Positions 28,967-63,747 of a stretch of 64,000 nucleotides of DNA are shown here, one piece after another. Where the stretch lies: contig CAJFCJ010000029.1 of NCBI GenBank assembly GCA_904063045.1, forward strand, positions 531,778 to 595,777. The letters run 5' to 3'. The notes under the pieces are model-generated. The model searched no databases. It was not told where the DNA came from and was given only the letters and a program-made list of their open reading frames with translations. This stretch comes from Dimorphilus gyrociliatus. Its lineage: Eukaryota; Animalia; Annelida. The position numbers were made by a program, and so were the translations under genes. The stretch's first letter is position 1; each line of letters starts with the position of its first letter.

Positions 28967-29154
28967 ATCGCTTCTCGGCCTTTTGGCTAAGATCAAAGTG
29001 TAGTATCTGTTCTAGTTAGTTTAATCGCTAGCTGGCAATCCATTGGGTTGCCTTAATAACGATTACGGGATTTTTGTGTGGTCTGGGTTCCTAGAAGCTT
29101 GCTTCAAAGAATCCTCGGGTTGACTTGGTCTAGCAGTACCTCCAAGTTCGGCCC
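28967..29154 (+). ncRNA. U2: Chimeric full-length U2 gene: host nt 1-39 plus element-borne U2-B nt 40-188
   Basis: The upstream flank and nt 1-39 are identical to U2-A. Downstream of about nt 58 the sequence differs but folds into all U2 stems and keeps the Sm site GATTTTTG. Confidence 0.92.
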
Positions 29155-34981: not shown

Positions 34982-35128
34982 TCTGTTCTAGTTAGTTTAA
35001 CCGCTAACTGATAACACACTGTGTTATCTAATATGGTTAACAGTATTTTTGTCTTCAGAGAAAGCATTAAGCTTGCTTAAGTTTTCTCACGGGTTGACTT
35101 GGTATAGCAGTACCTCCAAGTTTGGCCC
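34982..35128 (+). pseudogene. U2: Displaced 3' part (nt 40-186) of host U2-A
   Basis: Identical to 27129-27275 and followed by the same downstream spacer. Confidence 0.95.
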
Positions 35129-42239: not shown

Positions 42240-43709
42240 AAAAAAGAACAATAGGCCATTGGGAGCAAGGAACCAGTCAACGGTGGAATAGTAACGCGCG
42301 AATCCGAAGAAAAAGAACTTTTGGCAGAATTGCAATATAAAGGAAGTATTTATTAATCAGGAGATAAGGTAATAATATCAGTTATTTCACCGTCACCTAA
42401 TAATTCGATGTGGTCCAAACAGAATAATGAATTTCAGCAACATCAATCAAACTTTAAACTACCCCTATTATCGCTTTTAGGAATGCAAAGTAATTACGAG
42501 TTAGAAGAGACAGAAAACAATAGTTCGAACAGACATTTGATTAATGGTTAAGCTATCGTGTATATGTTTGGAATATTTAGTGAATTGAGGAAAGAGAGAG
42601 AGAGTTCAAGGGAATTGTTCTACCAAATTGCGGATGAAAGAACGCGCGGAGGATTAACATGGATTGACTAAAGCGCAGAACATTATATGCAGAGGAGAGT
42701 GATTATAACATTCAATACATCAAAAGGAGACGTATAATGTACTGATATCTGGAGATAGAATATCGTACAGTGGATTTTAGGAAGATAAAGCAACGATAAT
42801 CCGAACTATGAAGAGGCTTCTTGCTGTTAATGTAAGTGTTAAATACCAATGCGTTGTTTCCCGCTAATAATTTGATAAAAAGGGTAAATTCAAAAACTAT
42901 AGACGCGCAAGAGATATGTCCAATGGAACCGTTAACAACGCGAATGTGAAAGGGTATGTGGATTTCGAAATAATACATAGCGAGCGTGTATAGAAACCTT
43001 CAAAACGCCGCCGCCGTTGCTTGGTTGTTATGTAGTACCAAGTGAAACCAGGAGAAATCCTGTGAAAGCTTATTGATCCTTTGACCGCAGAAAAATACCG
43101 AGAACCAATCGCGTAAGATAGTTCTAATCTACCACTATGTCCACTGGAGGCATCGCCAACACAACTACGATTTAGAAGTAGAGGACAAGACCATCTACGA
43201 CGTAGATGACAACCAAAATTTCATGATGAGGGAGTTCAGGATTGGCATGTGTGAGTGTTAATTTGATTGGAAGCGTCTAATAATAGTTGTAATGCTTTTT
43301 CCAGTTAGATGTCTGGAGATTGGGCAGTGAATAGTAAATCACCGACGTGTACTTCTGCCACTTTTTCTCCACATGCCACACGTCCACCAAATAATTATAC
43401 AAATAATAAATTATTTTTCCGCCGTCCACACTTGGCCTTCCAGAGTTTCAAGCGCTGAAGAAACGTTGATTTATAATTCTTGTTATGAAGAAAGAAAGCA
43501 ATTGTGGTTTGATTCTTCTGCAATATGATAATGCCGACATAGAAGCTTTTTTCATACTACCCGGTAGCGTGGACCATTTCTGGAACATAAATAAAAATAA
43601 ATTGTATAAGTGTACTGAAAATCCCACTTAACCTCAAAAGGACAAGAGGTTCTTTTCCCTTATATGTGCTATTGTTTTAGAGTAGAAATTTTCTTCCGTA
43701 GAAGAAAAT
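42240..43709 (-). repeat. Inverted copy of the U2 downstream spacer (about 35129-36580)
   Basis: For example, 42261 GGGAGCAAGGAACCAGTCAACGG is the reverse complement of about 36550. The MYYFEIHIPF ORF appears at 35860 (+) and 42978 (-). Confidence 0.88.
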
Positions 43710-43856
43710 GGGCCAAACTTGGAGGTACTGCTATACCAAGTCAACCCGTGAGAAAACTTAAGCAAGCTTAATGCTTTCTCTGAAGACAAAAATACTGTTA
43801 ACCATATTAGATAACACAGTGTGTTATCAGTTAGCGGTTAAACTAACTAGAACAGA
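43710..43856 (-). pseudogene. U2: Displaced 3' part (nt 40-186) of host U2-A
   Basis: Reverse complement of 34982-35128. Confidence 0.95.
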
Positions 43857-44159
43857 TATATTTAAATGTATTATACAGGTAAAAGGAGGAGACAGTGTTT
43901 TTCAAATGCAGGATGAATGGCATAGAGGAAGTTAGGTAAACAAAAAAGGGGTAAAAGTGACATAGACGACGGGAGTTAAAGGCCATTGTGGACCAACAGG
44001 AACCGGCACATGAGTAACAAATAGCAGAATTAGGTAATAGTATGGTAGCAAGGGAAAAGGGGTAAATCCCAGTGACACAGGCACTTTACAATAAATGACG
44101 ACACCCTTAATATATCACAGACACATAACGAACGAATAAACAATTAATAGCCAACAATT

Positions 44160-47100
44160 TTAATGACCGTTAATGTGCGCGTCGTAGGCGTCCTTTGAGC
44201 CACGAATCGCTTCCGCCACGCACAGCTGGGACAGCATACCCCGGTAGGCGAACGCTATGCCCAGAGCCCGAAAAACCCTGGAGTTCCCCTTGCACCAGGC
44301 GCCCAAAGACCCAACAGCAAATGGTAGAATCTCTACTGCTTTGCCTTGTCCCTCCAGCTCCGTTTTCAAGACCGCGTACTTATTGACCTTCTCCTGGGCA
44401 GCACGAGCAAGGGCGCCAGGCCTCTCAAAGGGGACCGTGACGTCGATAAGCACCACCCTGTCATCCGCGCTCCTAATAACTATATCAGGGCGAAGGGCAG
44501 TGGAGGATTCGGGCAACGCCCTGTTTACCGTAATGGTGGAACCGGGCGCCAGGCGGGCACCTTTGACCAGACGATCCTGGATGGCGTTATGGCGATCGCC
44601 GTACAGGCCATACCCAGTACGGCAGTTGTTTAGGACATGCCGCACTGATTCCACTTGGAAGTGACAACGCCTGCAATCAGGCCTAACCCGGGCACTGTAT
44701 CTGGACTTGACTGCATTGATCCGGAGGAGACCCAACCGAGCCCGAAAGATGAATCGATAGTCCTTATACCGCAAGCCGAAGCCGGTGTAGAGGAAATGGT
44801 TGGAGACAGGGTGCAAGCAGGTGTCCTGAAAGGACCTGCCCTGCTCCGCCAATTTAACGAACTCTCTTACACTGAGCTCCGTAACCGCCGACCTAAGTAA
44901 TGGGAAAGGTTCGTGGGTGCGACGGATACGGATAGCTAAGGGTTCAAGGTTGCGTTCATCATCCCCAAACGACAATTCCTGCCAGTTGGATTGGACCTCG
45001 TGGCGAAATTGCGGCTGGTTTTGGTGCCAACTCCTACTCACCGTGGCGGTAATGGTAGGCGTAAGGGCGTCATCGAGGTGCCATTCAAGATTTATGGATT
45101 TATGCAAGCGCCTGGAAGCCGACCTAGTGACTGACATCACCGTCTGAGCGGAAGAGGAGGAAGAGGAGAAAGGAGGAGTCGTTGACCCATTAAGGTAAGA
45201 GGCCAAAACAACACCTGTAAGAGCGGTGCCGCGAGCCACTCTGGCCTTAGCGGCCTTAACGAGAGTTGCGCAGGCGATAAAGCGGATGGTAGGGTCCTCC
45301 GATTTAAGGAGTTGAAAAGTATGTCCTACACGGGCTATGTCAACCTCTACCCTAGTGGGGATTAGGCCGACACCGCCCATTTTAGCGGGAGCGGCAAAGA
45401 ACGACCTAGCGGCGTTGTTTGTGGTGGCTATGGCGGTACGAATAGCGCGAATAACCACCGAATCGAGGTCCGCTAGTTCCTCCTTAAGGAAACGGTGGGT
45501 TCGCAGTGCGAACTGAATACGGGGGAGAATGAAGGCCTTGATGGAGGACACCTTTTGCCAGGGCGCGAGGTTGGACTCCATAGTAAGCCGAAGAAGGGAG
45601 CGGATCCTCTCAATCACCCCATCATCCTTGAGAAGCTCCTTCCTAAAGCCAATGGGCGTGCCCAGATAGGTGTAGGTCTCCTCAAGGCCTAGCGCCTTAA
45701 TAGGTTCGTTAGCCACGAATAGGGGGGTCGGGTCGGCGACTCCACGATGGAGGCACAAGGTAGCGCATTTACGCGGAGCAAATTTTAGGTTTGCCAGACC
45801 AGCCGACCGCTCGGCAACATTGAGGAGGTGTTGCAGACCACGGCGGGAGTTTGCGACCACCACAAGGTCATCGGCATAGGCTAGGCCGCAAATGGATACG
45901 GACCTTAGGCCAAGGACAGCCGCCTGGGCGGCGATCTTGAACCCATCTCTGTCTTTGGAGGCGTTAACACTACGTAGAGCTCCCTCAAAGCAGAGATTAA
46001 AGAGGAAGGGGCTGAGACCGTCGCCCTGCCTAACACCTTTGTGGATGGAAATGGGTGCTGTGCAACCTTCCGTCGTGATAACCTCCGTAGTGGCGTTGGT
46101 GTATACGTTCCGGATAAGGTTAACGAGACTGGGCGGCACTCCTACGTGGGACAACATGTCGAAGATAACGCAATGGGGGATAGAGGGGAAGGCTTGCGCA
46201 ATATCAACGAATCCGAGGCAGATGCGCTTATCACTACGTTTGGCCTCGTCAAGCGCCGAGGTCAAGGCAAAGTTGTGCTCGAAGACACCGGGGGCCGTAG
46301 TAAACCCCCTTTGCTCCTTGCTAAGGATATCATTGTCTCTGGCCCATCTACTCAGACGCCGGGCCAGCAGACTACTAAAAAGTTTGTAGATGGTAGAGAG
46401 GAGGGCAATAGGCCTACAGTTGGCCGGCAGCGAAGGGTCGAGATCCTTTTTGGGGATCATTATAGTGCGAGACCGCTTCAGACAGGAGGGAATCTGTCCA
46501 TGTCGCCAGAACAACCTGTAAAAAGCCCTGAGGGTTAAGCCTTTCGGATCGAATTTCTTAAGATCCTTGTAGGTGATGCCGTCAAGACCGGGAGCAGAGT
46601 TGTTGGTTCGCTTAAGCTGGCCAACAATCTCAGCGCGGGATGGGGGACGGAGCAAGGGGTGATTAGGGTCGGTCAATTCTATGCCGTCGATGGTCCTACT
46701 TTCGAGGTTAAAGGTATCGGGGGTGAAAGCAGGGGGGATTTCATTGGCGAGTTGAACGTCCTCTGGGTCAGGCGGTGGGGCCGCGGCCGGAAGAAACTCC
46801 CTATCGGGAGACCACTGATATGAAGGAGGAGGTGGGGCGACCGATTCGATAAAGAAAGAGGTCATATCTTCAATGGAAGCAGAACACTTGGTCTCCTCAG
46901 GGTTAGCGATACGGCGGAAAGTGCTAGCCGGATTACGCTTGTAGGCCCTTTGGATATTAGTAGCCGCTTGCCATTGATTGTTAGCCGCATTCGGAGGGGG
47001 GCGAGCAAAGTTCCTATTCGCGAATCTATTACCAGTACCCTCATGCACCCTGGACTTGGCGTTGGAGATGGCGAGAACCCAGGCGTCGAAAACTTCTTCT

Positions 47101-47216
47101 ACGCGGGACCATTCGGACTGACTTCCAATAATCTTGGGGGCAAACTCAGTTAGGATAGCGGCAGCGAAACTCGAAAGTTGCTCCTCGCGTTCGCGTTCAA
47201 GCTGTTGATGGGACAC
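44160..47216 (-). CDS. Uninterrupted RT-CCHC-RLE frame of E2 (1018 codons, no zinc fingers, out of frame with the 5' ATG)
   Basis: ORF track. The frame opens at GTG, not ATG. The upstream ORF 47242-47889 stops three codons after the splice junction. Confidence 0.75.
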   Translation of the reverse strand: MSHQQLEREREEQLSSFAAAILTEFAPKIIGSQSEWSRVEEVFDAWVLAISNAKSRVHEGTGNRFANRNFARPPPNAANNQWQAATNIQRAYKRNPASTFRRIANPEETKCSASIEDMTSFFIESVAPPPPSYQWSPDREFLPAAAPPPDPEDVQLANEIPPAFTPDTFNLESRTIDGIELTDPNHPLLRPPSRAEIVGQLKRTNNSAPGLDGITYKDLKKFDPKGLTLRAFYRLFWRHGQIPSCLKRSRTIMIPKKDLDPSLPANCRPIALLSTIYKLFSSLLARRLSRWARDNDILSKEQRGFTTAPGVFEHNFALTSALDEAKRSDKRICLGFVDIAQAFPSIPHCVIFDMLSHVGVPPSLVNLIRNVYTNATTEVITTEGCTAPISIHKGVRQGDGLSPFLFNLCFEGALRSVNASKDRDGFKIAAQAAVLGLRSVSICGLAYADDLVVVANSRRGLQHLLNVAERSAGLANLKFAPRKCATLCLHRGVADPTPLFVANEPIKALGLEETYTYLGTPIGFRKELLKDDGVIERIRSLLRLTMESNLAPWQKVSSIKAFILPRIQFALRTHRFLKEELADLDSVVIRAIRTAIATTNNAARSFFAAPAKMGGVGLIPTRVEVDIARVGHTFQLLKSEDPTIRFIACATLVKAAKARVARGTALTGVVLASYLNGSTTPPFSSSSSSAQTVMSVTRSASRRLHKSINLEWHLDDALTPTITATVSRSWHQNQPQFRHEVQSNWQELSFGDDERNLEPLAIRIRRTHEPFPLLRSAVTELSVREFVKLAEQGRSFQDTCLHPVSNHFLYTGFGLRYKDYRFIFRARLGLLRINAVKSRYSARVRPDCRRCHFQVESVRHVLNNCRTGYGLYGDRHNAIQDRLVKGARLAPGSTITVNRALPESSTALRPDIVIRSADDRVVLIDVTVPFERPGALARAAQEKVNKYAVLKTELEGQGKAVEILPFAVGSLGAWCKGNSRVFRALGIAFAYRGMLSQLCVAEAIRGSKDAYDAHINGH

Positions 47217-47898
47217 GTGCGCAGGGGGAGGGGACGAGGGGTCAGTGAGGAGACCTCAACGAAACCGGATCAGCAGTAGAAGAAGAGGAAGAGAGGACGG
47301 CAGAGCGGGCACCCAGAACCGAAGAGGAAGAAGATGCAGCCGTAGTAGCAGTGGTAGTAGAGGTAGTAGAGGTAGAAGAGGGGGAGGGAGAACCGGTAAT
47401 GTCCATAACACGCGAGACAGGTGTAGAGGTGACGGGAACGGAGATGGGAGAGTTAGAGAGGATATCCGAAACAGGCACACACACACACACAGGATCGGCA
47501 GGGGGAATAAACAAAGAACGAGGAGGGAAGGAGCGTCGGGCCGCGGGAAGGCAGAGAAGACGTTCTTGAGAGGCCAGCCGCACATCAGCCGCACATAACA
47601 TATCCGCCATGTATCCAGCATCCTCGTCCTCTGCAGCGCCCACTGCCGGACCAAAGTCCAGGCCGTTGTCTTCCGCGGGGACGCTAGCTAAAGAGCCCGC
47701 ATCCTGCTTTGCCGCGTCTTCCATCTCGTCATCACGCCGAACAGGAGACTTGTCCATGAGCTCAGATAGAGTGGAGCCGTCGTTACTTTGTACAGCCCTA
47801 CCCATCGTCATCTGCTCCTCCGGTAGCCCTGAAAAGGGCTGTTTTGTAACTGTTCCACCTTGGGAGGTCTTAAGTGAGGCCTTCTCCATTGAGAAGAA

Positions 47899-48047
47899 GG
47901 GCCGAACTTGGAGGTACTGCTAGACCAAGTCAACCCAAGGATTCTTCGAAGCAAGCTTCTAGGAACCCAGACCACACAAAAATCCCGTAATCGTTATTAA
48001 GGCAACCCAATGGATTGCCAGCTAGCGATTAAACTAACTAGAACAGA
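47899..48047 (-). ncRNA. U2: Element-borne U2-B module (nt 40-188) of E2, promoterless, preceded directly by the E3 3' end
   Basis: TCTGTTCTAGTTAGTTTAATCGCTAGC...GGCCC follows ...TTTAAATAAC of E3. Confidence 0.9.
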
Positions 48048-49879
48048 GTTATTTAAATGTATTATACAGGTAAAAGGAGGAGACAGTGTTTTTCAAATGC
48101 AGGATGAATGGCATAGAGGAAGTTAGGTAAACAAAAAGAAGGGGTAAAAGTGACATAGACGACAGGAGTTAAAGGCCAATGTGGACCAACAGGAACCGGC
48201 ACATGAGTAACAAATAGCAGAATTAGGAAATAGTATGGAAGCAAGGGAAAAGGGGTAAATCCCAGTGACAGAGGCACTTTACAATAATTTACGACACCCT
48301 TAATATATCACAGACACATAACGAACGAATAAACAATTAATAGCCAGTAATTTTAATGACCGTTAATGTGCGCGTCGTAGGCGTCCTTTGAGCCACGAAT
48401 CGCTTCCGCCACGCACAGCTGGGACAGCATACCCCGGTAGGCGAACGCTATGCCCAGAGCCCGAAAGACCTTGGAGTTCCCCCTGCACCAGGCGCCCAAA
48501 GAACCAACAGCAAATGGTAGAATCTCTACTGCCTTGTCTTGTCCCTCCAGCTCCGTTTTCAAGACCGCATACTTGTTGATCTTCTCCTGGGCAGCGCGAG
48601 CAAGGGCGCCAGGCCTTTCAAAGGGGACCGTGACGTCGATCAGCACCACCCTGTCATCCGCGCTCCTAATCACTATATCAGGGCGAAGGGCAGTGGAGGA
48701 TTCGGGCAACGCCCTGTTTACCGTAATGGTGGAACCGGGCGCCAGGCGGGCACCTTTGACCAGACGATCCTGGATGGCGTTATGGCGATCACCGTACAGG
48801 CCATACCCAGTACGGCAGTTGTTTAGGACATGCCGCACTGATTCCACTTGGAAGTGACAACGCCTGCAATCAGGCCTAACCCGGGCACTGTATCTGGACT
48901 TGACTGCATTGATCTGGAGAAGACCCAACCGAGCCCGAAAGATGAATCGGTAGTCCTTATACCGCAAGCCGAAGCCGGTGTAGAGGAAATGGTTGGAGAC
49001 AGGGTGCAAGCAGGTGTCCTGAAAGGACCTGCCCTGCTCCGCCAATTTAGCGAACTCTCTTACATTGAGCTCCGTGACCGCCGACCCTCAACGAAACCGG
49101 ATCAGCAGTAGAAGAAGAGGAAGAGAGGACGGCAGAGGGGGCATCCAGAACCGAAGAGGAAGAAGATGCAGCCGTAGTAGCAGTGGTAGTAGAGGTAGTA
49201 GAGGTAGAAGAGGGGGAGGGAGAACCGGTAATGTCCATAACACGCGAGACAGGTGTAGAGGTGACGGGAACGGAGATGGGAGAGTTAGAGAGGTTATCCG
49301 AAACAGGCACACACACACACACAGGATCGGCAGGGGGAATAAACAAAGAACGAGGAGGGAAGGAGCGTCGGGCCGCGGGAAGGCAGAGAAGACGTTCTTG
49401 AGAGGCCAGCCGCACATCAGCCGCACATAACATATCCGCCATGTATCCAGCATCCTCGTCCTCTGCAGCGCCCACTGCCGGACCAAAGTCCAGGCCGTTG
49501 TGTTCCGCGGGGACGCTAGCTAAAGAGCCCGCATCCTGCTTTGCCGCGTCTTCCATCTCGTCCTCACGTCGAACAGGAGACTTGTCCATGAGCTCAGATA
49601 GAGAGGAGCCGTCGTTACTTTGTACAGCCCTGCCCATCGTCATCTGCTCCTCCGGTAGCCCTGAAAAGGGCTGTTTTGTAACTGTTCCACCTTGGGAGGT
49701 CTTAAGTGAGGCCTTCTCCATTGAGAAGAAGGGCCGAACTTGGAGGTACTGCTAGACCAAGTCAACCCAAGGATTCTTCGAAGCAAGCTTCTAGGAACCC
49801 AGACCACACAAAAATCCCGTAATCGTTATTAAGGCAACCCAATGGATTGCCAGCTAGCGATTAAACTAACTAGAACAGA
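48048..49879 (-). mobile_element. Retrotransposon copy E3, spliced isoform 2 (lacks the equivalent of 29800-33931), non-autonomous, 1832 bp
   Basis: The junction GAGG|GTCGGC at 49086/49085 joins the same donor to the CTTAG acceptor. RT is absent. The RLE-coding tail and 3' UTR are retained. Confidence 0.92.
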
Positions 49880-49918
49880 TACTACACTTTGATCTTAGCC
49901 AAAAGGCCGAGAAGCGAT
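49731..49918 (-). ncRNA. U2: Chimeric full-length U2 gene (host nt 1-39 plus U2-B of E3)
   Basis: 188 nt with the host upstream region at 49919 onward. Two substitutions versus E1 U2-B, both at unpaired positions. Confidence 0.92.
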
Positions 49919-51613
49919 AACATCCATCTTTTCATCAGTTTTTTTATGCGTTTCGAGCCTATTTCCGTTACTTTTTGTCCCTGCGATTCGAAATTTAGAA
50001 CCTTTTTGTAGTACTATCTTATTTTCATAAACGCACGGAGCGGTTTTCGCCTCACATTGATTTAGAATTTTTGTGAAATATTTTTTCATTGCTAATTCAA
50101 AAATGTTAGAACGACTAGATTATTGAGAATAGGTCACTAACTGCTTTGTTTTTAAAATTTGGTAGCACTTTGAAGTTTCCTTTTACAAACGGTAGACGGC
50201 GTCTTTTGCAAATTCAGTAATTTGTAGATGGCGTATGATGGCATTTTTAACGGATGCTTATGTCTGTAGATGGCGTATCTTTCCAATTTATCAGTCGTTA
50301 TTTATCTGGTAGATGGCGTCATTATTCCTTTTTCTCGTGTACTAATATTATCTTTAAATTTAGTGAAATAGGAAAGAAGTGATACTTATACTTTTTGAAA
50401 TTTACAGTTTAATCTTCAAAAATTTTTAACTGTATCAAGATTATCATTCGGTTTTTTTTCTAAAGTTTCATTTAAGTGGTTTTTTATTTTTGAATTCTGT
50501 TATTTTGTAATTAATCTTTATAAAATTCGATTTAGAACAGTTTGACTTTAAAGAATTACAGTATATAGATACCAGATAGACCGAATTATCCGACTCATCA
50601 ATAAAAAGTTTTGTTTGTACTCCAGTCTTTTCTAGGGGTTACAAGGGCGATACAAATTTCGGCGATACATTTATATCTACTGGAAGTGGAGGCAGGGATC
50701 ACTCCGGTAAAAAATAGTGCGCCAAGTAGTCAAAAGTGCACCAGTTTTACCAATGCGTTGTTTCCCGCTAATAATTTGATAAAAAGGGTAAATTCAAAAA
50801 CTATAGACGCGCAAGAGATATGTCCAATGGAACCGTTAACAACGCGAATGTGAAAGGGTATGTGGATTTCGAAATAATACATAGCGAGCGTGTATAGAAA
50901 CCTTCAAAACGCCGCCGCCGTTGCTTGGTTGTTATGTAGTACCAAGTGAAACCAGGAGAAATCCTGTGAAAGCTTATTGATCCTTTGACCGCAGAAAAAT
51001 ACCGAGAACCAATCGCGTAAGATAGTTCTAATCTACCACTATGTCCACTGGAGGCATCGCCAACACAACTACGATTTAGAAGTAGAGGACAAGACCATCT
51101 ACGACGTAGATGACAACCAAAATTTCATGATGAGGGAGTTCAGGATTGGCATGTGTGAGTGTTAACTTGATTGGAAGCGTCTAATAATAGTTGTAATGCT
51201 TTTTCCAGTTAGATGTCTGGAGATTGGGCAGTGAATAGTAAATCACCGACGTGTACTTCTGCCACTTTTTCTCCACATGCCACACGTCCACCAGATAATT
51301 ATACAAATAATAAATTATTTTTCCGCCGTCCACACTTGGCCTTCCAGAGTTTCAAGCGCTGAAGAAACGTTGATTTATAATTCTTGTTATGAAGAAAGAA
51401 AGCAATTGTGGTTTGATTCTTCTGCAATATGATAATGCCGACGTAGAAGCTTTTTTCATACTACCCGGTAGCGTGGACCATTTCTGGAACATAAATAAAA
51501 ATAAATTGTATAAATGTACTGAAAATCCCACTTAACCTCAAAAGGACAAGAGGTTCTTTTCCCTTATATGTGCTATTGTTTTAGAGTAGAAATTTTCTTC
51601 CGTAGAAGAAAAT
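49919..51613 (-). repeat. U2 array spacer, short unit, inverted orientation
   Basis: Reverse complement of about 27277-28966. The proximal part carries the SNP type seen at 38612-39366. Confidence 0.9.
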
Positions 51614-51760
51614 GGGCCAAACTTGGAGGTACTGCTATACCAAGTCAACCCGTGAGAAAACTTAAGCAAGCTTAATGCTTTCTCTGAAGACAAAAATACT
51701 GTTAACCATATTAGATAACACAGTGTGTTATCAGTTAGCGGTTAAACTAACTAGAACAGA
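51614..51760 (-). pseudogene. U2: Displaced 3' part (nt 40-186) of host U2-A
   Basis: Reverse complement of 34982-35128. Confidence 0.95.
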
Positions 51761-52077
51761 GTTATTTAAATGTATTATACAGGTAAAAGGAGGAGACAGT
51801 GTTTTTCAATTGCAGGATGAATGGCATAGAGGGAGTTAGGTAAACAAAAAAGAGGGGTATAAGTGACATAGACGACAGGAGTTAAAGGCCAATGTGGACC
51901 AACAGGAACCGGCACATGAGAACAAATAGCAGAATAGGATTGATGTAGAAGCAAGGGAAAAGGGGTAAATCCCAGTGACACAGGCACTTTACAATAATTT
52001 ACGACACCCTTAACATATCACAGACACATAACAGACGAAAAAACGAATAAACAGTTGATAGCCAGTACATTTTTATT

Positions 52078-55000
52078 TTAATGACCGTTAATGTGCGCGT
52101 CGTAGGCGTCCTTTGAGCCACGAATCGCTTCCGCCACGCACAGCTGGGACAGCATACCCCGGTAAGCGAACGCTATGCCCAGAGCCCGAAAGACCTTGGA
52201 GTTCCCCCTGCACCAGGCGCCCAAAGAACCAACAGCAAATGGTAGAATCTCTACTGCCTTGCCTTGTCCCTCCAGCTCAGTTTTTAGGACCGCATACTTG
52301 TTGATCTTCTCCTGGGCAGCGCGAGCAAGGGCGCCAGGCCTCTCAAAGGGGACCGTGACGTCGATCAGCACCACCCTGTCATCCGCGCACCTAATCACTA
52401 TGTCAGGGCGAAGGGCAGTGGAGGATTCGGGCAACGTCCTGTTTACCGTAATGGTGGAACCGGGCGCCAGGCGGGCACCTTTGACCAGACGATCCTGGAT
52501 GGCGTTATGTCGATCACCGTACAGGCCATACCCAGTACGGCAGTTGTTTAGAACATGCCGCACTGATTCCACTTGGAAGTGGCACCGCCTGCAATCAGGC
52601 CTAACCCGGGCACTGTATCTGGACTTGACGGCATTGGTCTGGAGAAGACCCAGCCGAGCCCGAAAGATGAATCGGTAGTCCTTATACCGCAAGCCGAAGC
52701 CGGTGTAAAGGAAATGGTTGGAGACAGGGTGCAAGCAGGTGTCCTGGAAGGACCTGCCCTGCTCCGCCAATTTAGCGAACTCTCTAACATTGAGCTCCGT
52801 GACCGCCGACCTAAGTAATGGGAAAGGTTCGTGGGTGCGACGGATACGGATAGCTAGGGGTTCGAGGTTGCGTTCGTCATCCCCAAACGACAATTCCTGC
52901 CAGTTGGATTGGACCTCGTGGCGAAATTGCGGCTGGTTCTGGTGCCAACTCCTACTCACCGTGGCGGTAATGGTAGGCGTAAGGGCGTCATCAAGGTGCC
53001 ATTCAAGGTTTATAGATTTGTGCAAGCGCCTGGAGGCCGACCTAGTGACTGACATCACCGTCTGAGCGGAAGAGGAGGAAGAGGAGAAAGGAGGAGTCGT
53101 TGACCCGTTGAGGTAAGAGGCCAAAACGTCCCCTGTAAGAGCGGTGCCGCGGGCCACTCTGGCCTTAGCGGCCTTAACAAGAGTTGCGCAGGCGATAAAG
53201 CGGATGGTAGGGTCCTCCGATTTGAGGAGTTGAAAAGTGTGTCCCACACGGGCTATGTCCACCTCTACCCTAGTGGGGATTAGGCCTACACCGCCCATTT
53301 TAGCGGGAGCGGCAAAGAACGACCTAGCGGCGTTGTTTGTGGTGGCCATGGTGGTGCGGATAGCGCGAATAACCATCGAATCGAGGTCCGCTAGTTCCTC
53401 CTTAAGGAAACGGTGGGTTCGCAGTGCGAATTGAATACGGGGGAGAATGAAGGCCTTGATGGAGGACACCTTTTGCCAGGGCGCGAGGTTGGACTCCATA
53501 GTAAGCCGAAGAAGGGAGCGGATCCTCTCAATCACCCCATCATCCTTGAGAAGCTCCTTCCTGAAGCCAATGGGCGTGCCCAGATAGGTGTAGGTCTCCT
53601 CAAGGCCTAGCGCCTTAATAGGTTCGTTAGCCACGAATAGGGGGGTCGGGTCGGCGACTCCACGATGGAGGCACAAGGTAGCGCATTTACGCGGAGCAAA
53701 TTTTAGGTTTGCCAGACCCGCCGACCGCTCGGCAACATTGAGGAGGTGTTGCAGACCACGGCGAGAGTTTGCGACCACCACAAGGTCATCGGCATAGGCT
53801 AGACCGCAAATGGATACGGACCTTAGACCTAGGACAGCCGCCTGAGCGGCGATCTTGAACCCATCTCTGTCTTTTGAGGCGTTAACGCTACGTAGAGCTC
53901 CCTCAAAGCAGAGATTAAAGAGGAAGGGGCTGAGACCGTCGCCCTGCCTAACACCTTTGTGGATGGAAATGGGTGCTGTGCATCCTTCCGTCGTGATAAC
54001 CTCCGTAGTGGCGTTGGTATATACATTCCGGATAAGGTTAACGAGACTGGGCGGCACTCCTACAAGGGACAACATGTCGAAGATAACGCAATGGGGGATA
54101 GAGGGGAAGGCTTGCGCAATATCGACGAATCCTAGGCAGATGCGTTTATCACTACGTTTGGCCTCGTCAAGGGCCGAGGTCAAGGCGAAGTTATGCTCGA
54201 AGACACCGGGGGCCGTAGTAAATCCCCTTTGCTCCTTGCTAAGGATATCATTGTCTCTGGCCATCTACTCAGACGCCGGGCCAGCAGACTACTAAAAAGT
54301 TTGTAAATGGTAGAGAGGAGGGCAATAGGCCTACAGTTGGCCGGCAGCGAAGGGTCGAGATCCTTTTTGGGGATCATTATAGTGCGAGACCGCTTCAGAC
54401 AGGAGGGAATCTGTCCATGTCGCCAGAACAACCTATAGAAAGCCCTGAGGGTTAAGCCTTTCGGATCGAATTTCTTAAGATCCTTGTAGGTGATGCCGTC
54501 AAGACCGGGAGCAGAGTTGTTGGTTCGCTTAAGCTGGCCGACAATCTCAGCGCGGGATGGGGACGGAGCAAGGGGTGGTTAGGGTCGGTCAATTCTATGC
54601 CGTCGATGGCCCTGCTTTCGAAGTTAAAGGTATCGGGGGTGAGAGCAGGGGGGATTTCATTGGCGAGTTGAACGTCTTCTGGGTCAGGCGGTGGGGCCGC
54701 GGCCGGAAGAAACTCCCTGTCGGGAGACCACTGATATGAAGGAGGAGGAGGGGCGACCGATTCAATAAAGAAAGAGGTCATATCTTCAATGGAAGCGGAA
54801 CACTTGGTCTCCTCAGGGTTAGCGATACGGCGGAAAGTGCTAGCCGGATTACGCTTGTAGGCCCTTTGGATATTAGTAGCCGCTTGCCATTGATTGTTAG
54901 CCGCATTCGGAGGGGGGCGAGCAAAGTTCCTATTCGCGACTCTACCGCCAGCACTCTCATGCACCCTGGACTTGGCGTTGGAAATGGCGAGAACCCAGGC

Positions 55001-57578
55001 GTCGAAAACTTCTTCCACGCGGGACCATTCGGACTGACTTCCAATAATCTTGGGGGCAAACTCAGTTAGGATAGCGGCAGCGAAACCCGAAAGTTGCTCC
55101 TCGCGTTCCCGTTCAAGCTGTTGATGGGACACGTGCGCAGGAGGAGGGGACGGGGGGTCGGGGAGGAGACTGTTATTATTATTATCATTAGTAACCTCGT
55201 GGTCACGGGACACCGACCGATCCAACCGCGGAGGGGGAGACCAATCTCGAGCGGGAGAGCGGGGACAAGAAAGCGGGGGGGGAGAAGAGGAAGAAGGGAC
55301 GAGAGAACTGGGGATAATGTCAGCGTCCTCGTCGTAGGAACCATCCCTCTCCGTATCGCACGAAGGCGGCGGGGGGGAATCGGGGACCACCAGGGGCGCC
55401 ACCGGTGACGAGTCGATACCGGGGGCAAGGGTAGGCCTAGGTGGGGAGGGATTAGAGGCGACGCGTTCTTCACGGATAAGTTGACTTAGGCTTGTGGAAG
55501 AAGGGCGCGGGGGAGGCGGGGGAGACATCACGGAGGCAGGACCAGCGGCCGAGTCCGGAGAGCTCAACCCCTTATTAACTTTAGGCGGGGAAATCTGACC
55601 TTTAGGCGGGGAAATCCGCTCTTTAGGAGGGGAAATCCGAGCTTGGGCAGAGGGGTTCGGACCTGTAGTTGGGGGGAACGAACTGTCTTGGTCGGAGCAC
55701 CGACTTTAGGAGGAGGTTTCCCAGCCTCCGTCGGTCGTGCAAGGGTGGCCCTAGAAGAGGAGGAAGAAACAACCGAACCCGAATCTGGGATCGCACTGGC
55801 CGGGGGTATTTTTGGGACGAGTGCTGAGGAGGAGATAACCTTACGGGGACGGGGTTTCCTGATCTTACTATTATTTTTGTTTTTAGAAGGCGACGGCGGC
55901 AGAGTGGCGAGCGGCAAGAGAGCCTTTGCGGAAGGAAGAGCCGGGGGGGAGATTTGACCACTTTCGCAAACGAGCCATTCGGCAGAGCGGGAAGAGTGGG
56001 AATGGTGGCGGGGGAAGGCCCAACAGAGATGCGTTGGACAATGGGCTGGGAAGGGGGGGACTGGGATGCAGCGGCAGGAGAGTCCGAGTCATCTAAATAG
56101 ATGGACGAGGGATGACCCCCATGATCGCGGTTGAAATGTCTCTTCACAATCCCCAGTGAACGGAAGAAATGGCGACAGCCCCGACACATAAAGGTCACTT
56201 GCTTAGCGTGGACGGAGCGGATGTGGGCTGAAATCCTGTTGGTAGTGCCGGAAAAGTTGTTGCAAACAGGGCACATTCTATCCAGAAGAGGATAGGTTAA
56301 CGGGATGTCGGTAGGGAGAAGGGGAACGGTAGGAGGAGACGCGGCGGAGACATTAGCTCCGGAAATGCACACGCAGGGCGACACCTTGCAAGGACATTGC
56401 GCGGACACAGAAGCAACGACCGGCGGAGGCCTAGGCGCGTTGGGAGGAATTGTCACACGGTCTGAGTCAGCCGCTGCCTGATTAGGACAGGGGGCCGGCG
56501 CAGGCCTACTCGTGGGAGAAAGATTCTTCTCACAGACAGGGGCAGCGGAGGGATTAGCGGTTGGCTGAGGCCTATCTGTGGGAGCGTTAACCGGAGTACC
56601 GGCCACGCTAACCGAAGTCCCACAGGATGATTTTGAATTATCAACAGGTACAATGGCGGACGAGGGAGGAACAGCGGCGACAACAGCAGAGGCACCACCA
56701 ACCGAACGACGCCGTTCGGAGTTGTAAAAAGTTTGCGTAGCAACCCTTATGGGGGCTATTGCGGGTGCAGGAGAAGAAGCAGCCTTCTTCTTCTTGGCCG
56801 CGAGGGAACGAGTATAGATAGGGGAACGGTCAGGTACAGGGACAGCAACAGTAACAACAGATGGGGCGGGACGGGACTTGGACGGGGGACGAGAAGGAGG
56901 GACAGACACAGAAACATGACCGCCAGGAACAGCCGTACTCACCCTCGACGAAACCGGATCAGCAGTAGCAGAAGAGGAAGAGAGGACGGCAGAGGGGGCA
57001 CCCAGAACCGAAGAGGAAGAAGATGCAGCCGTAGTAGCAGTGGTAGTAGTAGTAGAGGTAGTAGAGGTAGAAGAGGGGGAGGGAGAACCGGTAATGTCCA
57101 TAACACGCGAGACAGGTGTAGAGGTGACGGGAACGGAGATGGGAGAGTTGTTGTCCGAAACAGGCACACACACACACACAGGATCGGCAGGAGGAGTAAA
57201 CAAAGAACGAGGAGGGAAGGAGCGTCGGGCCGCGGGAAGGCAGAGAAGACGTTCTTGAGAGGCCAGCCGCACATCAGCCGCACATAACATATCCGCCATG
57301 TATCCAGCATCCTCGTCCTCTGCAGCGCCCACTGCCGGACCAAAGTCCAGGCCGTTGTCTTCCGCGGGGACGCTAGCTAAAGAGCCCGCATCCTGCTTTG
57401 CCGCGTCTTCCATCTCGTCATCACGTCGAACAGGAGACTCGTCCATGAGCTCAGATAGAGAGGAGCCGTCGTTACTTTGTACAGCCCTGCCCATCGTCAT
57501 CTGCTCCTCCGGTAGCCCTGAAAAGGGCTGTTTTGTAACTGTTCCACCTTGGGAGGTCTTAAGTGAGGCCTTCTCCAT
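52078..57578 (-). CDS. E4 polyprotein (ZF-RT-RLE), interrupted by 1-nt indels
   Basis: ORF pieces 55623-57578, 54452-55567 and 52078-54264 match E1. Confidence 0.9.
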
Positions 57579-57587
57579 TGAGAAGAA

Positions 57588-57736
57588 GGGCCGAACTTGG
57601 AGGTACTGCTAGACCAAGTCAACCCGAGGATTCTTTGAAGCAAGCTTCTAGGAACCCAGACCACACAAAAATCCCGTAATCGTTATTAAGGCAACCCAAT
57701 GGATTGCCAGCTAGCGATTAAACTAACTAGAACAGA
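57588..57736 (-). ncRNA. U2: Element-borne U2-B module (nt 40-188) of E4, preceded directly by the E5 3' end
   Basis: Same sequence as 29006-29154. Confidence 0.9.
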
Positions 57737-60700
57737 GTTATTTAAATGTATTATACAGGTAAAAGGAGGAGACAGTGTTTTTCAATTGCAGGATGAATGG
57801 CATAGAGGGAGTTAGGTAAACAAAAAAGAGGGGTATAAGTGACATAGACGACAGGAGTTAAAGGCCAATGTGGACCAACAGGAACCGGCACATGAGAACA
57901 AATAGCAGAATAGGATTGATGTAGAAGCAAGGGAAAAGGGGTAAATCCCAGTGACACAGGCACTTTACAATAATTTACGACACCCTTAACATATCACAGA
58001 CACATAACAGACGAAAAAACGAATAAACAGTTGATAGCCAGTACATTTTTATTTTAATGACCGTTAATGTGCGCGTCGTAGGCGTCCTTTGAGCCACGAA
58101 TCGCTTCCGCCACGCACAGCTGGGACAGCATACCCCGGTAAGCGAACGCTATGCCAGAGCCCGAAAGACCTTGGAGTTCCCCCTGCACCAGGCGCCCAAA
58201 GAACCAACAGCAAATGGTAGAATCTCTACTGCCTTGCCTTGTCCCTCCAGCTCAGTTTTTAGGACCGCATACTTGTTGATCTTCTCCTGGGCAGCGCGAG
58301 CAAGGGCGCCAGGCCTCTCAAAGGGGACCGTGACGTCGATCAGCACCACCCTGTCATCCGCGCACCTAATCACTATGTCAGGGCGAAGGGCAGTGGAGGA
58401 TTCGGGCAACGTCCTGTTTACCGTAATGGTGGAACCGGGCGCCAGGCGGGCACCTTTGACCAGACGATCCTGGATGGCGTTATGTCGATCACCGTACAGG
58501 CCATACCCAGTACGGCAGTTGTTTAGAACATGCCGCACTGATTCCACTTGGAAGTGGCACCGCCTGCAATCAGGCCTAACCCGGGCACTGTATCTGGACT
58601 TGACGGCATTGGTCTGGAGAAGACCCAGCCGAGCCCGAAAGATGAATCGGTAGTCCTTATACCGCAAGCCGAAGCCGGTGTAAAGGAAATGGTTGGAGAC
58701 AGGGTGCAAGCAGGTGTCCTGGAAGGACCTGCCCTGCTCCGCCAATTTAGCGAACTCTCTAACATTGAGCTCCGTGACCGCCGACCTAAGTAATGGGAAA
58801 GGTTCGTGGGTGCGACGGATACGGATAGCTAGGGGTTCGAGGTTGCGTTCGTCATCCCCAAACGACAATTCCTGCCAGTTGGATTGGACCTCGTGGCGAA
58901 ATTGCGGCTGGTTCTGGTGCCAACTCCTACTCACCGTGGCGGTAATGGTAGGCGTAAGGGCGTCATCAAGGTGCCATTCAAGGTTTATAGATTTGTGCAA
59001 GCGCCTGGAGGCCGACCTAGTGACTGACATCACCGTCTGAGCGGAAGAGGAGGAAGAGGAGAAAGGAGGAGTCGTTGACCCGTTGAGGTAAGAGGCCAAA
59101 ACGTCCCCTGTAAGAGCGGTGCCGCGGGCCACTCTGGCCTTAGCGGCCTTAACAAGAGTTGCGCAGGCGATAAAGCGGATGGTAGGGTCCTCCGATTTGA
59201 GGAGTTGAAAAGTGTGTCCCACACGGGCTATGTCCACCTCTACCCTAGTGGGGATTAGGCCTACACCGCCCATTTTAGCGGGAGCGGCAAAGAACGACCT
59301 AGCGGCGTTGTTTGTGGTGGCCATGGTGGTGCGGATAGCGCGAATAACCATCGAATCGAGGTCCGCTAGTTCCTCCTTAAGGAAACGGTGGGTTCGCAGT
59401 GCGAATTGAATACGGGGGAGAATGAAGGCCTTGATGGAGGACACCTTTTGCCAGGGCGCGAGGTTGGACTCCATAGTAAGCCGAAGAAGGGAGCGGATCC
59501 TCTCAATCACCCCATCATCCTTGAGAAGCTCCTTCCTGAAGCCAATGGGCGTGCCCAGATAGGTGTAGGTCTCCTCAAGGCCTAGCGCCTTAATAGGTTC
59601 GTTAGCCACGAATAGGGGGGTCGGGTCGGCGACTCCACGATGGAGGCACAAGGTAGCGCATTTACGCGGAGCAAATTTTAGGTTTGCCAGACCCGCCGAC
59701 CGCTCGGCAACATTGAGGAGGTGTTGCAGACCACGGCGAGAGTTTGCGACCACCACAAGGTCATCGGCATAGGCTAGACCGCAAATGGATACGGACCTTA
59801 GACCTAGGACAGCCGCCTGAGCGGCGATCTTGAACCCATCTCTGTCTTTTGAGGCGTTAACGCTACGTAGAGCTCCCTCAAAGCAGAGATTAAAGAGGAA
59901 GGGGCTGAGACCGTCGCCCTGCCTAACACCTTTGTGGATGGAAATGGGTGCTGTGCATCCTTCCGTCGTGATAACCTCCGTAGTGGCGTTGGTATATACA
60001 TTCCGGATAAGGTTAACGAGACTGGGCGGCACTCCTACAAGGGACAACATGTCGAAGATAACGCAATGGGGGATAGAGGGGAAGGCTTGCGCAATATCGA
60101 CGAATCCTAGGCAGATGCGTTTATCACTACGTTTGGCCTCGTCAAGGGCCGAGGTCAAGGCGAAGTTATGCTCGAAGACACCGGGGGCCGTAGTAAATCC
60201 CCTTTGCTCCTTGCTAAGGATATCATTGTCTCTGGCCCATCTACTCAGACGCCGGGCCAGCAGACTACTAAAAAGTTTGTAAATGGTAGAGAGGAGGGCA
60301 ATAGGCCTACAGTTGGCCGGCAGCGAAGGGTCGAGATCCTTTTTGGGGATCATTATAGTGCGAGACCGCTTCAGACAGGAGGGAATCTGTCCATGTCGCC
60401 AGAACAACCTATAGAAAGCCCTGAGGGTTAAGCCTTTCGGATCGAATTTCTTAAGATCCTTGTAGGTGATGCCGTCAAGACCGGGAGCAGAGTTGTTGGT
60501 TCGCTTAAGCTGGCCGACAATCTCAGCGCGGGATGGGGGACGGAGCAAGGGGTGGTTAGGGTCGGTCAATTCTATGCCGTCGATGGCCCTGCTTTCGAAG
60601 TTAAAGGTATCGGGGGTGAGAGCAGGGGGGATTTCATTGGCGAGTTGAACGTCTTCTGGGTCAGGCGGTGGGGCCGCGGCCGGAAGAAACTCCCTGTCGG

Positions 60701-63700
60701 GAGACCACTGATATGAAGGAGGAGGAGGGGCGACCGATTCAATAAAGAAAGAGGTCATATCTTCAATGGAAGCGGAACACTTGGTCTCCTCAGGGTTAGC
60801 GATACGGCGGAAAGTGCTAGCCGGATTACGCTTGTAGGCCCTTTGGATATTAGTAGCCGCTTGCCATTGATTGTTAGCCGCATTCGGAGGGGGGCGAGCA
60901 AAGTTCCTATTCGCGACTCTACCGCCAGCACTCTCATGCACCCTGGACTTGGCGTTGGAAATGGCGAGAACCCAGGCGTCGAAAACTTCTTCCACGCGGG
61001 ACCATTCGGACTGACTTCCAATAATCTTGGGGGCAAACTCAGTTAGGATAGCGGCAGCGAAACCCGAAAGTTGCTCCTCGCGTTCCCGTTCAAGCTGTTG
61101 ATGGGACACGTGCGCAGGAGGAGGGGACGGGGGGTCGGGGAGGAGACTGTTATTATTATTATCATTAGTAACCTCGTGGTCACGGGACACCGACCGATCC
61201 AACCGCGGAGGGGGAGACCAATCTCGAGCGGGAGAGCGGGGACAAGAAAGCGGGGGGGGAGAAGAGGAAGAAGGGACGAGAGAACTGGGGATAATGTCAG
61301 CGTCCTCGTCGTAGGAACCATCCCTCTCCGTATCGCACGAAGGCGGCGGGGGGGAATCGGGGACCACCAGGGGCGCCACCGGTGACGAGTCGATACCGGG
61401 GCAAGGGTAGGCCTAGGTGGGGAGGGATTAGAGGCGACGCGTTCTTCACGGATAAGTTGACTTAGGCTTGTGGAAGAAGGGCGCGGGGGAGGCGGGGGAG
61501 ACATCACGGAGGCAGGACCAGCGGCCGAGTCCGGAGAGCTCAACCCCTTATTAACTTTAGGCGGGGAAATCTGACCTTTAGGCGGGGAAATCCGCTCTTT
61601 AGGAGGGGAAATCCGAGCTTGGGCAGAGGGGTTCGGACCTGTAGTTGGGGGGGAACGAACTGTCTTGGTCGGAGCACCGACTTTAGGAGGAGGTTTCCCA
61701 GCCTCCGTCGGTCGTGCAAGGGTGGCCCTAGAAGAGGAGGAAGAAACAACCGAACCCGAATCTGGGATCGCACTGGCCGGGGGTATTTTTGGGACGAGTG
61801 CTGAGGAGGAGATAACCTTACGGGGACGGGGTTTCCTGATCTTACTATTATTTTTGTTTTTAGAAGGCGACGGCGGCAGAGTGGCGAGCGGCAAGAGAGC
61901 CTTTGCGGAAGGAAGAGCCGGGGGGGGAGATTTGACCACTTTCGCAAACGAGCCATTCGGCAGAGCGGGAAGAGTGGGAATGGTGGCGGGGGAAGGCCCA
62001 ACAGAGATGCGTTGGACAATGGGCTGGGAAGGGGGGGACTGGGATGCAGCGGCAGGAGAGTCCGAGTCATCTAAATAGATGGACGAGGGATGACCCCATG
62101 ATCGCGGTTGAAATGTCTCTTCACAATCCCCAGTGAACGGAAGAAATGGCGACAGCCCCGACACATAAAGGTCACTTGCTTAGCGTGGACGGAGCGGATG
62201 TGGCTGAAATCCTGTTGGTAGTGCCGGAAAAGTTGTTGCAAACAGGGCACATTCTATCCAGAAGAGGATAGGTTAACGGGATGTCGGTAGGGAGAAGGGG
62301 AACGGTAGGAGGAGACGCGGCGGAGACATTAGCTCCGGAAATGCACACGCAGGGCGACACCTTGCAAGGACATTGCGCGGACACAGAAGCAACGACCGGC
62401 GGAGGCCTAGGCGCGTTGGGAGGAATTGTCACACGGTCTGAGTCAGCCGCTGCCTGATTAGGACAGGGGGCCGGCGCAGGCCTACTCGTGGGAGAAAGAT
62501 TCTTCTCACAGACAGGGGCAGCGGAGGGATTAGCGGTTGGCTGAGGCCTATCTGTGGGAGCGTTAACCGGAGTACCGGCCACGCTAACCGAAGTCCCACA
62601 GGATGATTTTGAATTATCAACAGGTACAATGGCGGACGAGGGAGGAACAGCGGCGACAACAGCAGAGGCACCACCAACCGAACGACGCCGTTCGGAGTTG
62701 TAAAAAGTTTGCGTAGCAACCCTTATGGGGGCTATTGCGGGTGCAGGAGAAGAAGCAGCCTTCTTCTTCTTGGCCGCGAGGGAACGAGTATAGATAGGGG
62801 AACGGTCAGGTACAGGGACAGCAACAGTAACAACAGATGGGGCGGGACGGGACTTGGACGGGGGACGAGAAGGAGGGACAGACACAGAAACATGACCGCC
62901 AGGAACAGCCGTACTCACCTCGACGAAACCGGATCAGCAGTAGCAGAAGAGGAAGAGAGGACGGCAGAGGGGGCACCCAGAACCGAAGAGGAAGAAGATG
63001 CAGCCGTAGTAGCAGTGGTAGTAGTAGTAGAGGTAGTAGAGGTAGAAGAGGGGGAGGGAGAACCGGTAATGTCCATAACACGCGAGACAGGTGTAGAGGT
63101 GACGGGAACGGAGATGGGAGAGTTGTTGTCCGAAACAGGCACACACACACACACAGGATCGGCAGGAGGAGTAAACAAAGAACGAGGAGGGAAGGAGCGT
63201 CGGGCCGCGGGAAGGCAGAGAAGACGTTCTTGAGAGGCCAGCCGCACATCAGCCGCACATAACATATCCGCCATGTATCCAGCATCCTCGTCCTCTGCAG
63301 CGCCCACTGCCGGACCAAAGTCCAGGCCGTTGTCTTCCGCGGGGACGCTAGCTAAAGAGCCCGCATCCTGCTTTGCCGCGTCTTCCATCTCGTCATCACG
63401 TCGAACAGGAGACTCGTCCATGAGCTCAGATAGAGAGGAGCCGTCGTTACTTTGTACAGCCCTGCCCATCGTCATCTGCTCCTCCGGTAGCCCTGAAAAG
63501 GGCTGTTTTGTAACTGTTCCACCTTGGAGGTCTTAAGTGAGGCCTTCTCCATTGAGAAGAAGGGCCGAACTTGGAGGTACTGCTAGACCAAGTCAACCCG
63601 AGGATTCTTTGAAGCAAGCTTCTAGGAACCCAGACCACACAAAAATCCCGTAATCGTTATTAAGGCAACCAATGGATTGCCAGCTAGCGATTAAACTAAC

Positions 63701-63709
63701 TAGAACAGA
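57737..63709 (-). mobile_element. Full-length retrotransposon copy E5, head-to-tail with E4
   Basis: Near-identical to E1/E4. The 5' junction is to host U2 nt 1-39. Confidence 0.94.
58054..63552 (-). CDS. E5 polyprotein (ZF-RT-RLE), interrupted by 1-nt indels
   Basis: The 1076-aa ORF 58149-61379 and upstream pieces match E1. ATG at 63552, TAA at 58054. Confidence 0.88.
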
Positions 63710-63747
63710 TACTACACTTTGATCTTAGCCAAAAGGCGAGAAGCGAT
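63562..63747 (-). ncRNA. U2: Chimeric U2 gene (host nt 1-39 plus U2-B of E5)
   Basis: As 28967-29154 but with two single-C losses (probable read errors). The host upstream region follows at 63748-64000. Confidence 0.88.

Follow-up and report, generated by a model that had tools for sequence, protein, structure and literature searches.

Head-to-tail stacks of a Utopia-type retrotransposon with its own U2 segment in a U2 snRNA gene array of Dimorphilus gyrociliatus

Organization of the locus

The window analysed here is a 64,000-nucleotide stretch from the annelid Dimorphilus gyrociliatus, the final 64 kb of contig C29 (CAJFCJ010000029.1) in a 78-Mb assembly, and it carries a small array of U2 small nuclear RNA (snRNA) genes. 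The AT-rich background (~30% GC) is broken by GC-rich (~55%) elements, copies of a retrotransposon without long terminal repeats (non-LTR) that is, judged from its U2 site and predicted protein plan, of the Utopia type. Four of these copies form two head-to-tail stacks, in which part of a U2 sequence lies between one copy and the next. The stacks probably grew by sequential insertion into U2 copies that the element itself had rebuilt.

Rfam gave nine U2 matches in the window, of three kinds. The first is a single intact host gene, U2-A, an empty target at 27090..27282 (+) that scores 159 bits and serves as the reference sequence of our U2 alignments. Three complete U2 copies at host promoters score 126-140 bits, and five copies that lack nucleotides (nt) 1-39 score 72-96 bits, the internal copies among them reaching 72-73. 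A single insertion at 28967..35135 (+), delimited by alignment, Rfam, an exact-word scan, the RVT_1 domain and two C2H2 fingers, provides the reference for occupied units. It consists of a rebuilt U2 (28967-29161), which reads as A over nt 1-58 and then as a variant, B, over nt 59-190, the body of the full-length element E1 (29162-34981) and a remnant of host sequence, U2-A nt 40-190 (34982-35135).

Both stacks lie on the minus strand. Stack M2 is headed, at the host promoter, by a rebuilt (chimeric) U2 at 63555..63747, supported by Rfam (126 bits) and alignment, whose B part belongs to E5. The promoter-proximal, full-length E5 body (57737..63554), which differs from E1 and E4 by 1-nt indels only, is followed by an internal U2-B nt 40-190 (57581..57736), the 5' module of E4, identified by alignment and exact-word scan and bridged by a contig of sequencing run X1. 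The full-length E4 body (51761..57580), recognized by comparison with the other copies, is distal, and the stack closes with the original 3' half of its target, a U2-A nt 40-190 remnant at 51607..51760 that is 100% identical to U2-A nt 40-193. The window, and with it the contig, ends only 253 nt past E5's U2, and the promoter flank present there (63748-64000) has 99.2% identity to the host spacer unit.

A complete host spacer unit with a U2 promoter (49919..51606), 98.6% identical to the spacer at 27283-28966 over 1689 nt, leads to stack M1. Since this 1.69-kb spacer separates M2 from M1, the stacks fill adjacent units of one U2 array. M1 begins with a rebuilt U2 at 49724..49918 (Rfam 139 bits, and alignment), the B part of which is E3's, and continues with the body of E3 (48048..49723), a spliced copy without zinc fingers and reverse transcriptase (RT). 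The internal U2-B nt 40-190 that follows (47892..48047) is the 5' module of E2; it is identical to E3's B and two substitutions away from the B of the full-length form. The body of E2, another spliced copy (43857..47891), and a U2-A nt 40-190 remnant (43703..43856, by alignment and exact-word scan), the original 3' half of the M1 target, complete the stack.

The target site and the element-borne U2 segment

In U2-A, T40 opens the sequence TCTGTTCTAGTTAGTTTAA, and the 19 nt from nt 40 to 58 are common to U2-A and B; in the alignment the first difference is at nt 59. Over nt 59-190 the two are ~75% identical, with ~38 differing positions. The three promoter-proximal copies follow U2-A over nt 1-58, that is, over 39 nt upstream and 19 nt downstream of the presumed nick, then B over nt 59-190, with the element body directly after.

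The 19-mer core occurs 13 times in the whole assembly: in three intact U2-A genes (on contigs C29, C20 and C52), three rebuilt U2 copies, three A remnants and four internal B modules. The genome has only ~7 complete U2 genes. We considered whether B is a host gene or target rather than part of the element, and rejected this, as the genome-wide search found no stand-alone U2-B gene. The only other U2 variant, on contig C10 (L001, 890480-890671), is a separate gene, complete (Rfam 136 bits) and element-free. Its 3' half is closer to B than to A, and three positions of its 19-nt target core are changed; it may be a relative of B's source and possibly an immune target.

In every copy, the 10.5-kb leftover contig C272 included, the type of B matches the element on its 3' side: full-length-type B stands before E1, E4 and E5, and the two-substitution variant before E3 and E2. 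It follows that B forms the 5' module of the element downstream of it and is not a target belonging to the element upstream.

Junctions of the stacks

The exact-word scan found element 3' ends joined to B at 57737/57736 (E5, -) and 48048/48047 (E3, -), and joined to A at 34981/34982 (E1, +), 51761/51760 (E4, -) and 43857/43856 (E2, -). The first internal junction, J1 (57736/57737), reads ...TTTAAATAAC/TCTGTTC...; at the second, J2 (48047/48048), E3 ends ...TTTAAATAAC at 48048 on the minus strand and a pure B module starts with nt 40 at 48047. The element 3' ends read the same except in E2 (...AAATATA), and all abut T40 of the U2 3' part. The original prediction had held that at these two places the 3' end of one element joins nt 40 of the next element's U2-B, and that only the distal element of each pair joins U2-A; the exact-word scan and the alignment bear out the former, and the E2 and E4 junctions with A the latter.

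Genome-wide, the element 3' end occurs seven times (five in the window, two on C272), each time against U2 nt 40. There are only two kinds of junction, with B nt 40 within stacks and with A nt 40 distally, and the modules are unmixed: all four internal ones are pure B and all three terminal ones pure A. Chance was rejected as an explanation, because the exact 28+19-nt junction strings are repeated four times and reversed controls gave 0 matches.

Element family and encoded protein

Utopia elements are non-LTR retrotransposons of the NeSL group that are specific for U2 snRNA genes (Kojima & Jurka 2015, PMC4640811). The site agrees with this family, in that all seven 3' ends abut TCTGTTCTAGTTAGTTTAA and the Phytophthora infestans Utopia has the same flank. 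For the protein, open reading frames (ORFs) were read copy by copy in unrepaired frames. The full-length element encodes two C2H2 zinc fingers, within the one to three N-terminal fingers of Utopia, followed by RT, a CCHC motif and a restriction-like endonuclease. The two C2H2 motifs lie at element nt ~1306-1460 in E1 and E4, and E5 has a 1076-aa ORF with RT, CCHC and restriction-like endonuclease. The motifs CRRCHFQVESVRHVLNNC and RPDIVI...LIDVTV can be read in the protein; its RT and C-terminal domains both align with solved R2 proteins, and the part with the CCHC motif and the endonuclease, query residues 783-997, can be aligned with 9nl3, a solved R2 protein. RVT_1 is the sole Pfam match. 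In contrast to Keno there is no Exo_endo_phos domain, i.e. no apurinic/apyrimidinic endonuclease (APE), so that the RT is combined, as in Utopia, with a C-terminal CCHC motif and a PD..D/ExK endonuclease in place of APE. The 5' junction departs from the family: whereas an ordinary Utopia passes from U2 nt 1-38 straight into the element, here nt 1-39 are followed by the divergent B nt 40-190 and only then by the body. The element 5' end was searched for a ribozyme or another RNA family by an Rfam E-value scan, which gave U2 alone.

The nearest proteins, at 30-36% identity, are those of octocorals, spiders, Daphnia, ticks and a wasp. Of the seven loci fetched for these relatives, six are situated within U1/U2 arrays and have their U2 split, ordered as nt 1-38, element and nt 39-end; at the locus L005, the split U2 has nt 1-62 before the element. 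Neither an element-borne U2 nor a stack was found in the six split-U2 loci examined. The relatives' U1/U2 arrays also hold APE-type, Keno-like elements (Exo_endo_phos plus RVT_1) beside the Utopia-like ones (L008, 1331-6061; L009, 2909-7188), and these APE-type elements sit immediately upstream of U2 remnants.

Splice forms and divergence of the copies

Compared with E1, E2 lacks 29800-31571 and E3 lacks 29800-33931. The two gaps share one donor, GAGG/GTGAGT (E1 29799/29800), and use two acceptors, reading ...AACAG/ and ...CTTAG/, that of E2 at E1 31571/31572 and that of E3 at 33931/33932. A GT donor and AG acceptors at the gap boundaries indicate that E2 and E3 are copies of spliced RNAs. Both retain the ends of the element, namely B with exon 1 and the last 1.05 kb. 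E2 keeps an intact 1018-aa RT-CCHC-endonuclease ORF, and its N-terminal zinc fingers are gone. As the RT is missing from E3 and the presumed DNA-binding fingers from E2, both must have been mobilized by protein from another copy. In E1, both N-terminal C2H2 fingers (30468-30620) sit in the stretch that is spliced out of E2. The E3 splice joint recurs in run X4 (joint from 58783 to 56941). A 59-letter contig of run X1 connects the exon-1 donor (56943) with a good host acceptor, ...TTCCAG/AAATGGTCC, which lies at 27405/27406 (+), 124 nt downstream of U2-A, and likewise at 43579 and 51483 (-). This joint would be a third splice form, in which the element is read through into the host flank.

E1, E4, E5 and the full-length copy on C272 show zero substitutions among them and differ by 1-nt indels only, so that the full-length form must be very young. 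The contigs of four public runs have an extra C or G at 54260, 54558, 55670, 55942 and 58153. Since the four runs agree, the indels in these copies are assembly errors (single-base homopolymer deletions), of which E1, E4 and E5 each have their own set. The deletions break E4's ORFs and shorten the end of the ORF in E5. We looked for sequence differences between E4 and E5 as a safeguard against an assembly duplication of this pair and had to give this argument up, as not one substitution separates E4, E5 and E1 and the 1-nt indels are errors of the assembly.

The spliced copies have diverged from this form. Pairwise substitutions number 40 between the full-length form and E3, 39 between E3 and E2, and 62 between the full-length form and E2. 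Over 1,820 common sites, private substitutions amount to 38 in the full-length form, 6 in E3 and 32 in E2 (E2 versus E3, p = 2e-5). Divergence from the active full-length form thus falls from E2 to E3 to 0, and on these counts E3 lies almost on the path between E2 and the form that is active now. This ladder parallels the order in the stacks, with E2 distal (oldest), E3 proximal and the full-length form on top in C272.

Different splice forms and 39 substitutions mean that J2 joins two independent copies; the earlier claim that E3 and E2 are no simple duplication is upheld by their distinct GT-AG splice forms and ~3% divergence. The order that had been deduced for the two pairs stands in part: E2 before E3 agrees with the divergence ladder, but E4 before E5 does not follow, as these copies are identical and neither their order nor their independence can be read from the sequence.

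Contig C272 and short-read contigs

Contig C272 (L002, 1-10537) carries, in this order, a full-length element, a B of the E3 type, E3, B and E2, and differs from the window copies by 0-1 substitutions and ~47 single-base indels. It may be an allele or a locus with at least three stacked elements. Equally, it could derive by deletion from the arrangement of E4, spacer and E3 in the window.

The short-read contigs of the public runs were compared over 6,000 letters of the window. Record 1 of run X1 (4,387 letters) lies on 57263-59974 with 0 mismatches and bridges J1, reaching 2,238 letters into E5 and 473 into B and exon 1, and has full-length-type letters where E3 and E2 differ. It is the sole contig that meets our bridging rule; run X5, with 11 and 19 letters across J1, was not counted. 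In most runs the contigs do not connect the junction with variants specific to one copy. Run X3 shows only the full-length 3' end joined to A, with host flank, and U2 joined to B. Run X4, which has another organism label, contains the E3-type splice joint together with E3-type variants. It also covers the full-length body without a mismatch, yet its B letters are of the E3/E2 type only (57701, 57636/57786), and one of its contigs runs to B nt ~75 and then into unrelated GC-rich sequence. The contigs of the three organism A runs have no E3/E2-type letters, although contigs do not prove absence. The stack of E3 and E2 may be polymorphic.

Other features of the array

The plus-strand and minus-strand U2 clusters are placed tail to tail. 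Both close on the host spacer's first 858 nt (35136-35994, +; 42844-43702, -) and so form an inverted repeat, the 6.8-kb centre of which holds spacer pieces and an element fragment. A second form of the element, without a 5' U2, is found at 39367-39986 (+) and on C20 (L003, 1-3436, -). Here the host spacer breaks off ~74 nt short of the expected U2 start and is followed by ~210 nt of unrelated GC-rich sequence and then by the element, which starts at body nt ~70. In this region the two copies are identical and hence look like one duplicated structure. The C20 copy, cut by the contig start, has 98% identity to the full-length form.

Origin of the stacks

We favour sequential (double) insertion into U2 copies rebuilt by the element, and hold this origin to be somewhat better than an even chance. 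According to this model, the restriction-like endonuclease would nick U2 between nt 39 and 40, and the unit transposed through target-primed reverse transcription (TPRT) would be U2-B (nt 40-190) with the body and the 3' untranslated region. The template would most likely be a transcript started at the U2 promoter; we infer both this transcription and the function of the rebuilt U2. An insertion would leave the promoter, U2 nt 1-39, B nt 40-190, the body and the host's A nt 40-190, in that order. The promoter-proximal U2 would then be complete, with nt 1-58 as in an empty target, and could be cut again between nt 39 and 40. The B of a newcomer would take the position at the promoter, while the resident would be left with its B nt 40-190 behind the newcomer's 3' end. 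A stack would thereby grow at its promoter end, with the oldest element next to the host A remnant and one complete U2 per locus.

Several observations are accounted for by double insertion: the exact nt-40 junctions, the unmixed modules, the agreement of B with the downstream element and the age ladder. As in dimers formed by insertion, target sequence alone lies between the head-to-tail copies, the junction falls at the normal insertion point and, for E3 and E2, the copies are independent; for E5 and E4 their identity leaves this last point undecidable. Pure B and pure A modules are what TPRT requires, whereas annealing across a 150-nt, 75%-identical repeat does not require them. The counts fit without strain as well: by our tally, two to three of five to six insertion events went into rebuilt U2 copies, which make up about half of the six promoter-bearing U2 genes with a perfect site.

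Some points weigh against this model. Cleavage of a chimeric target is deduced from the identity of the 58-nt site and would have to occur as supposed. Two adjacent, singly occupied units that lose A nt 59-190, the spacer and U2 nt 1-39 via the 19 bp give the same DNA, and for C272 a deletion running from E4's A remnant to E3's U2 would be an equal explanation. E4 cannot be distinguished from E5, and this pair sits at a contig end; a single contig bridges it, from run X1, which may be the assembly's own sample. The ladder presumes a single evolving master lineage rather than coexisting lineages, and the sample is small, two to three stack junctions in five to six insertions. The original prediction of a re-insertion origin has fared well in one respect, as re-insertion at nt 39/40 would leave precisely this structure, but not in the other, since deletion or exchange via the 19 bp gives an identical sequence.

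This deletion or unequal exchange, between the A remnant of one occupied unit and the rebuilt U2 of its downstream neighbour, is the most serious alternative, to which we give a minor but real share of the probability. It could proceed by single-strand annealing, by microhomology-mediated joining (possibly after endonuclease cutting of the chimeric U2) or by unequal sister exchange. Its substrate would be direct repeats ~1.9 kb apart, with 19 bp identical and 75% identity thereafter, and no second insertion would be needed. It is favoured by the location of the stacks in neighbouring units of a tandem, mostly occupied U2 array and by the sameness of its product, and removing the stretch from E4's A remnant to E3's U2 from the window leaves exactly the order of C272. 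However, 19 bp is very short for homologous exchange, for which the 6-kb elements offer far better homology. Near their 3' ends A and B also have a second block of comparable length in common (14 + 18 nt), and still no A/B mosaic occurs among the four internal and three terminal modules. Deletion predicts no relation between order and divergence, and the two match. Each such event would, moreover, cost one promoter-bearing U2 unit in a genome that shows ~7 complete U2 genes.

An assembly artefact is improbable and would concern the junction of E5 and E4 only: one full-length copy might have been entered twice where C29 ends, or reads from a junction between the full-length element and E3 might have been threaded into E4. 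The zero substitutions between E4 and E5, the contig stop 253 nt past E5's U2, the leftover C272 with E3 after the full-length element and the 1-nt indel errors of the assembly in these copies would all fit. Against it, record 1 of X1 links the full-length 3' untranslated region to B and exon 1 of the full-length type (473 nt, 0 mismatches), where the E3 type would differ at several positions, and E1, E4 and E5 have separate sets of indel errors. An assembly duplication of E4 and E5 is thus made less credible by the bridging contig and the private indel sets, but the sequence alone cannot rule it out; the junction of E3 and E2 is unaffected by this question.

Template jumping, in which the RT would pass from the 5' end of a first RNA to the 3' end of a second within one TPRT event, is an in-vitro property of R2-type RTs and would agree with the lack of extra nucleotides at the junctions, but we consider it very improbable: it needs an RNA 5' end exactly at U2 nt 40, where RNA started at the U2 promoter would bring nt 1-39 into the junction and the Rfam scan found no 5' processing signal or ribozyme; it implies copies of the same age, although E2 and E3 differ by 39 substitutions and stand at different depths of the ladder; and, should C272 and the window be alleles, the full-length copy is a later addition.

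Relation to known systems

The element shares with Utopia the insertion point, with a 3' flank that starts TCTGTTCT and a published position of nt 39 (one extra A in this U2 accounts for nt 40 here), the order of N-terminal zinc fingers, RT, CCHC and PD..D/ExK endonuclease, strict U2 specificity and a low copy number. It differs in that the U2 part beside the element diverges from the host gene (B versus A, ~75%), from which we conclude that this part travels with the element.

Stacking itself has clear precedents and is alone no surprise. In Nasonia, another Utopia flanks 20 of 94 3' junctions (PMC4640811), and these tandems may serve as a precedent by analogy. In Phytophthora, intact U2 genes lie directly upstream of Utopia elements, and the supplementary tables for P. 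infestans list contigs with four to five junctions between Utopia and U2 (39-103) at a period of 6.5-7 kb (PMC4640811). Such arrays are probably a further precedent, and the published intact U2 upstream of the Phytophthora elements may be the same feature as the element-borne U2 described here. The authors read the Phytophthora pattern as deletion of a 5' fragment, and re-insertion into a rebuilt target was not proposed (PMC4640811).

R1 elements form tandems with a 33-nt rDNA target-site duplication between them, and P-element and hobo dimers are known as well; such dimers can expand later (McGurk & Barbash 2018, PMC5932611; Roiha et al. 1981, cited therein). As here, the second copy uses target sequence beside the first, so that a head-to-tail dimer with the target between its copies results. 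The re-usable site in those dimers is, however, a short duplication from staggered cuts, while in Dimorphilus it is a 150-nt gene segment inside the element that matches the host for only 19 nt past the nick, and a complete gene stands as the upstream copy. The Dada DNA transposons of U1, U6 and tRNA genes combine specificity for small-RNA genes with tandem insertions, which are separated by a 6-bp target-site duplication only (Kojima & Jurka 2013, PMC3706591). They differ in being DNA transposons, in having no target-gene module and in not rebuilding the gene.

A further likeness lies outside eukaryotes. In bacteria, integrative elements that sit at tRNA genes contain the tRNA 3' end, keep the gene whole and pile up in tandem. 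They, too, bring a replacement gene end, and the rebuilt site receives more elements, but they depend on site-specific recombinases acting on DNA in prokaryotes, as opposed to TPRT in an animal. What is new here is that the divergence of B from A marks the U2 piece between two elements as the downstream element's. Because B differs from A, the re-usable site is an element-borne gene segment and not a target-site duplication.

If the stacks arose by re-insertion, the endonuclease would require at most 19 nt of host sequence on the downstream side of its nick, the U2 module would be a property of the element, and a site-specific retrotransposon could multiply on few targets without exhausting them and without cost in genes, which would also bear on the design of safe-harbour insertion with R2-like proteins. 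The order within a stack would give a non-LTR family an internal time line, which is rare.

More tentatively, and with the odds rather against it, target rebuilding and stacking could be a general mode of persistence of U2-specific elements on few targets, with only the top element expressed and the locus being a dated pile. In Phytophthora, five Utopia families share ~10 U2 targets, with 41 disrupted and 7 intact U2 genes, and their persistence has been hard to explain (PMC4640811). Were the proposal true, an insertion would take no U2 gene from the host and use up no target, and a newcomer would cut the resident off from the single U2 promoter. This would answer the puzzle of Kojima and Jurka on persistence in Phytophthora, and the turnover of lineages would become a contest for the position at the promoter.

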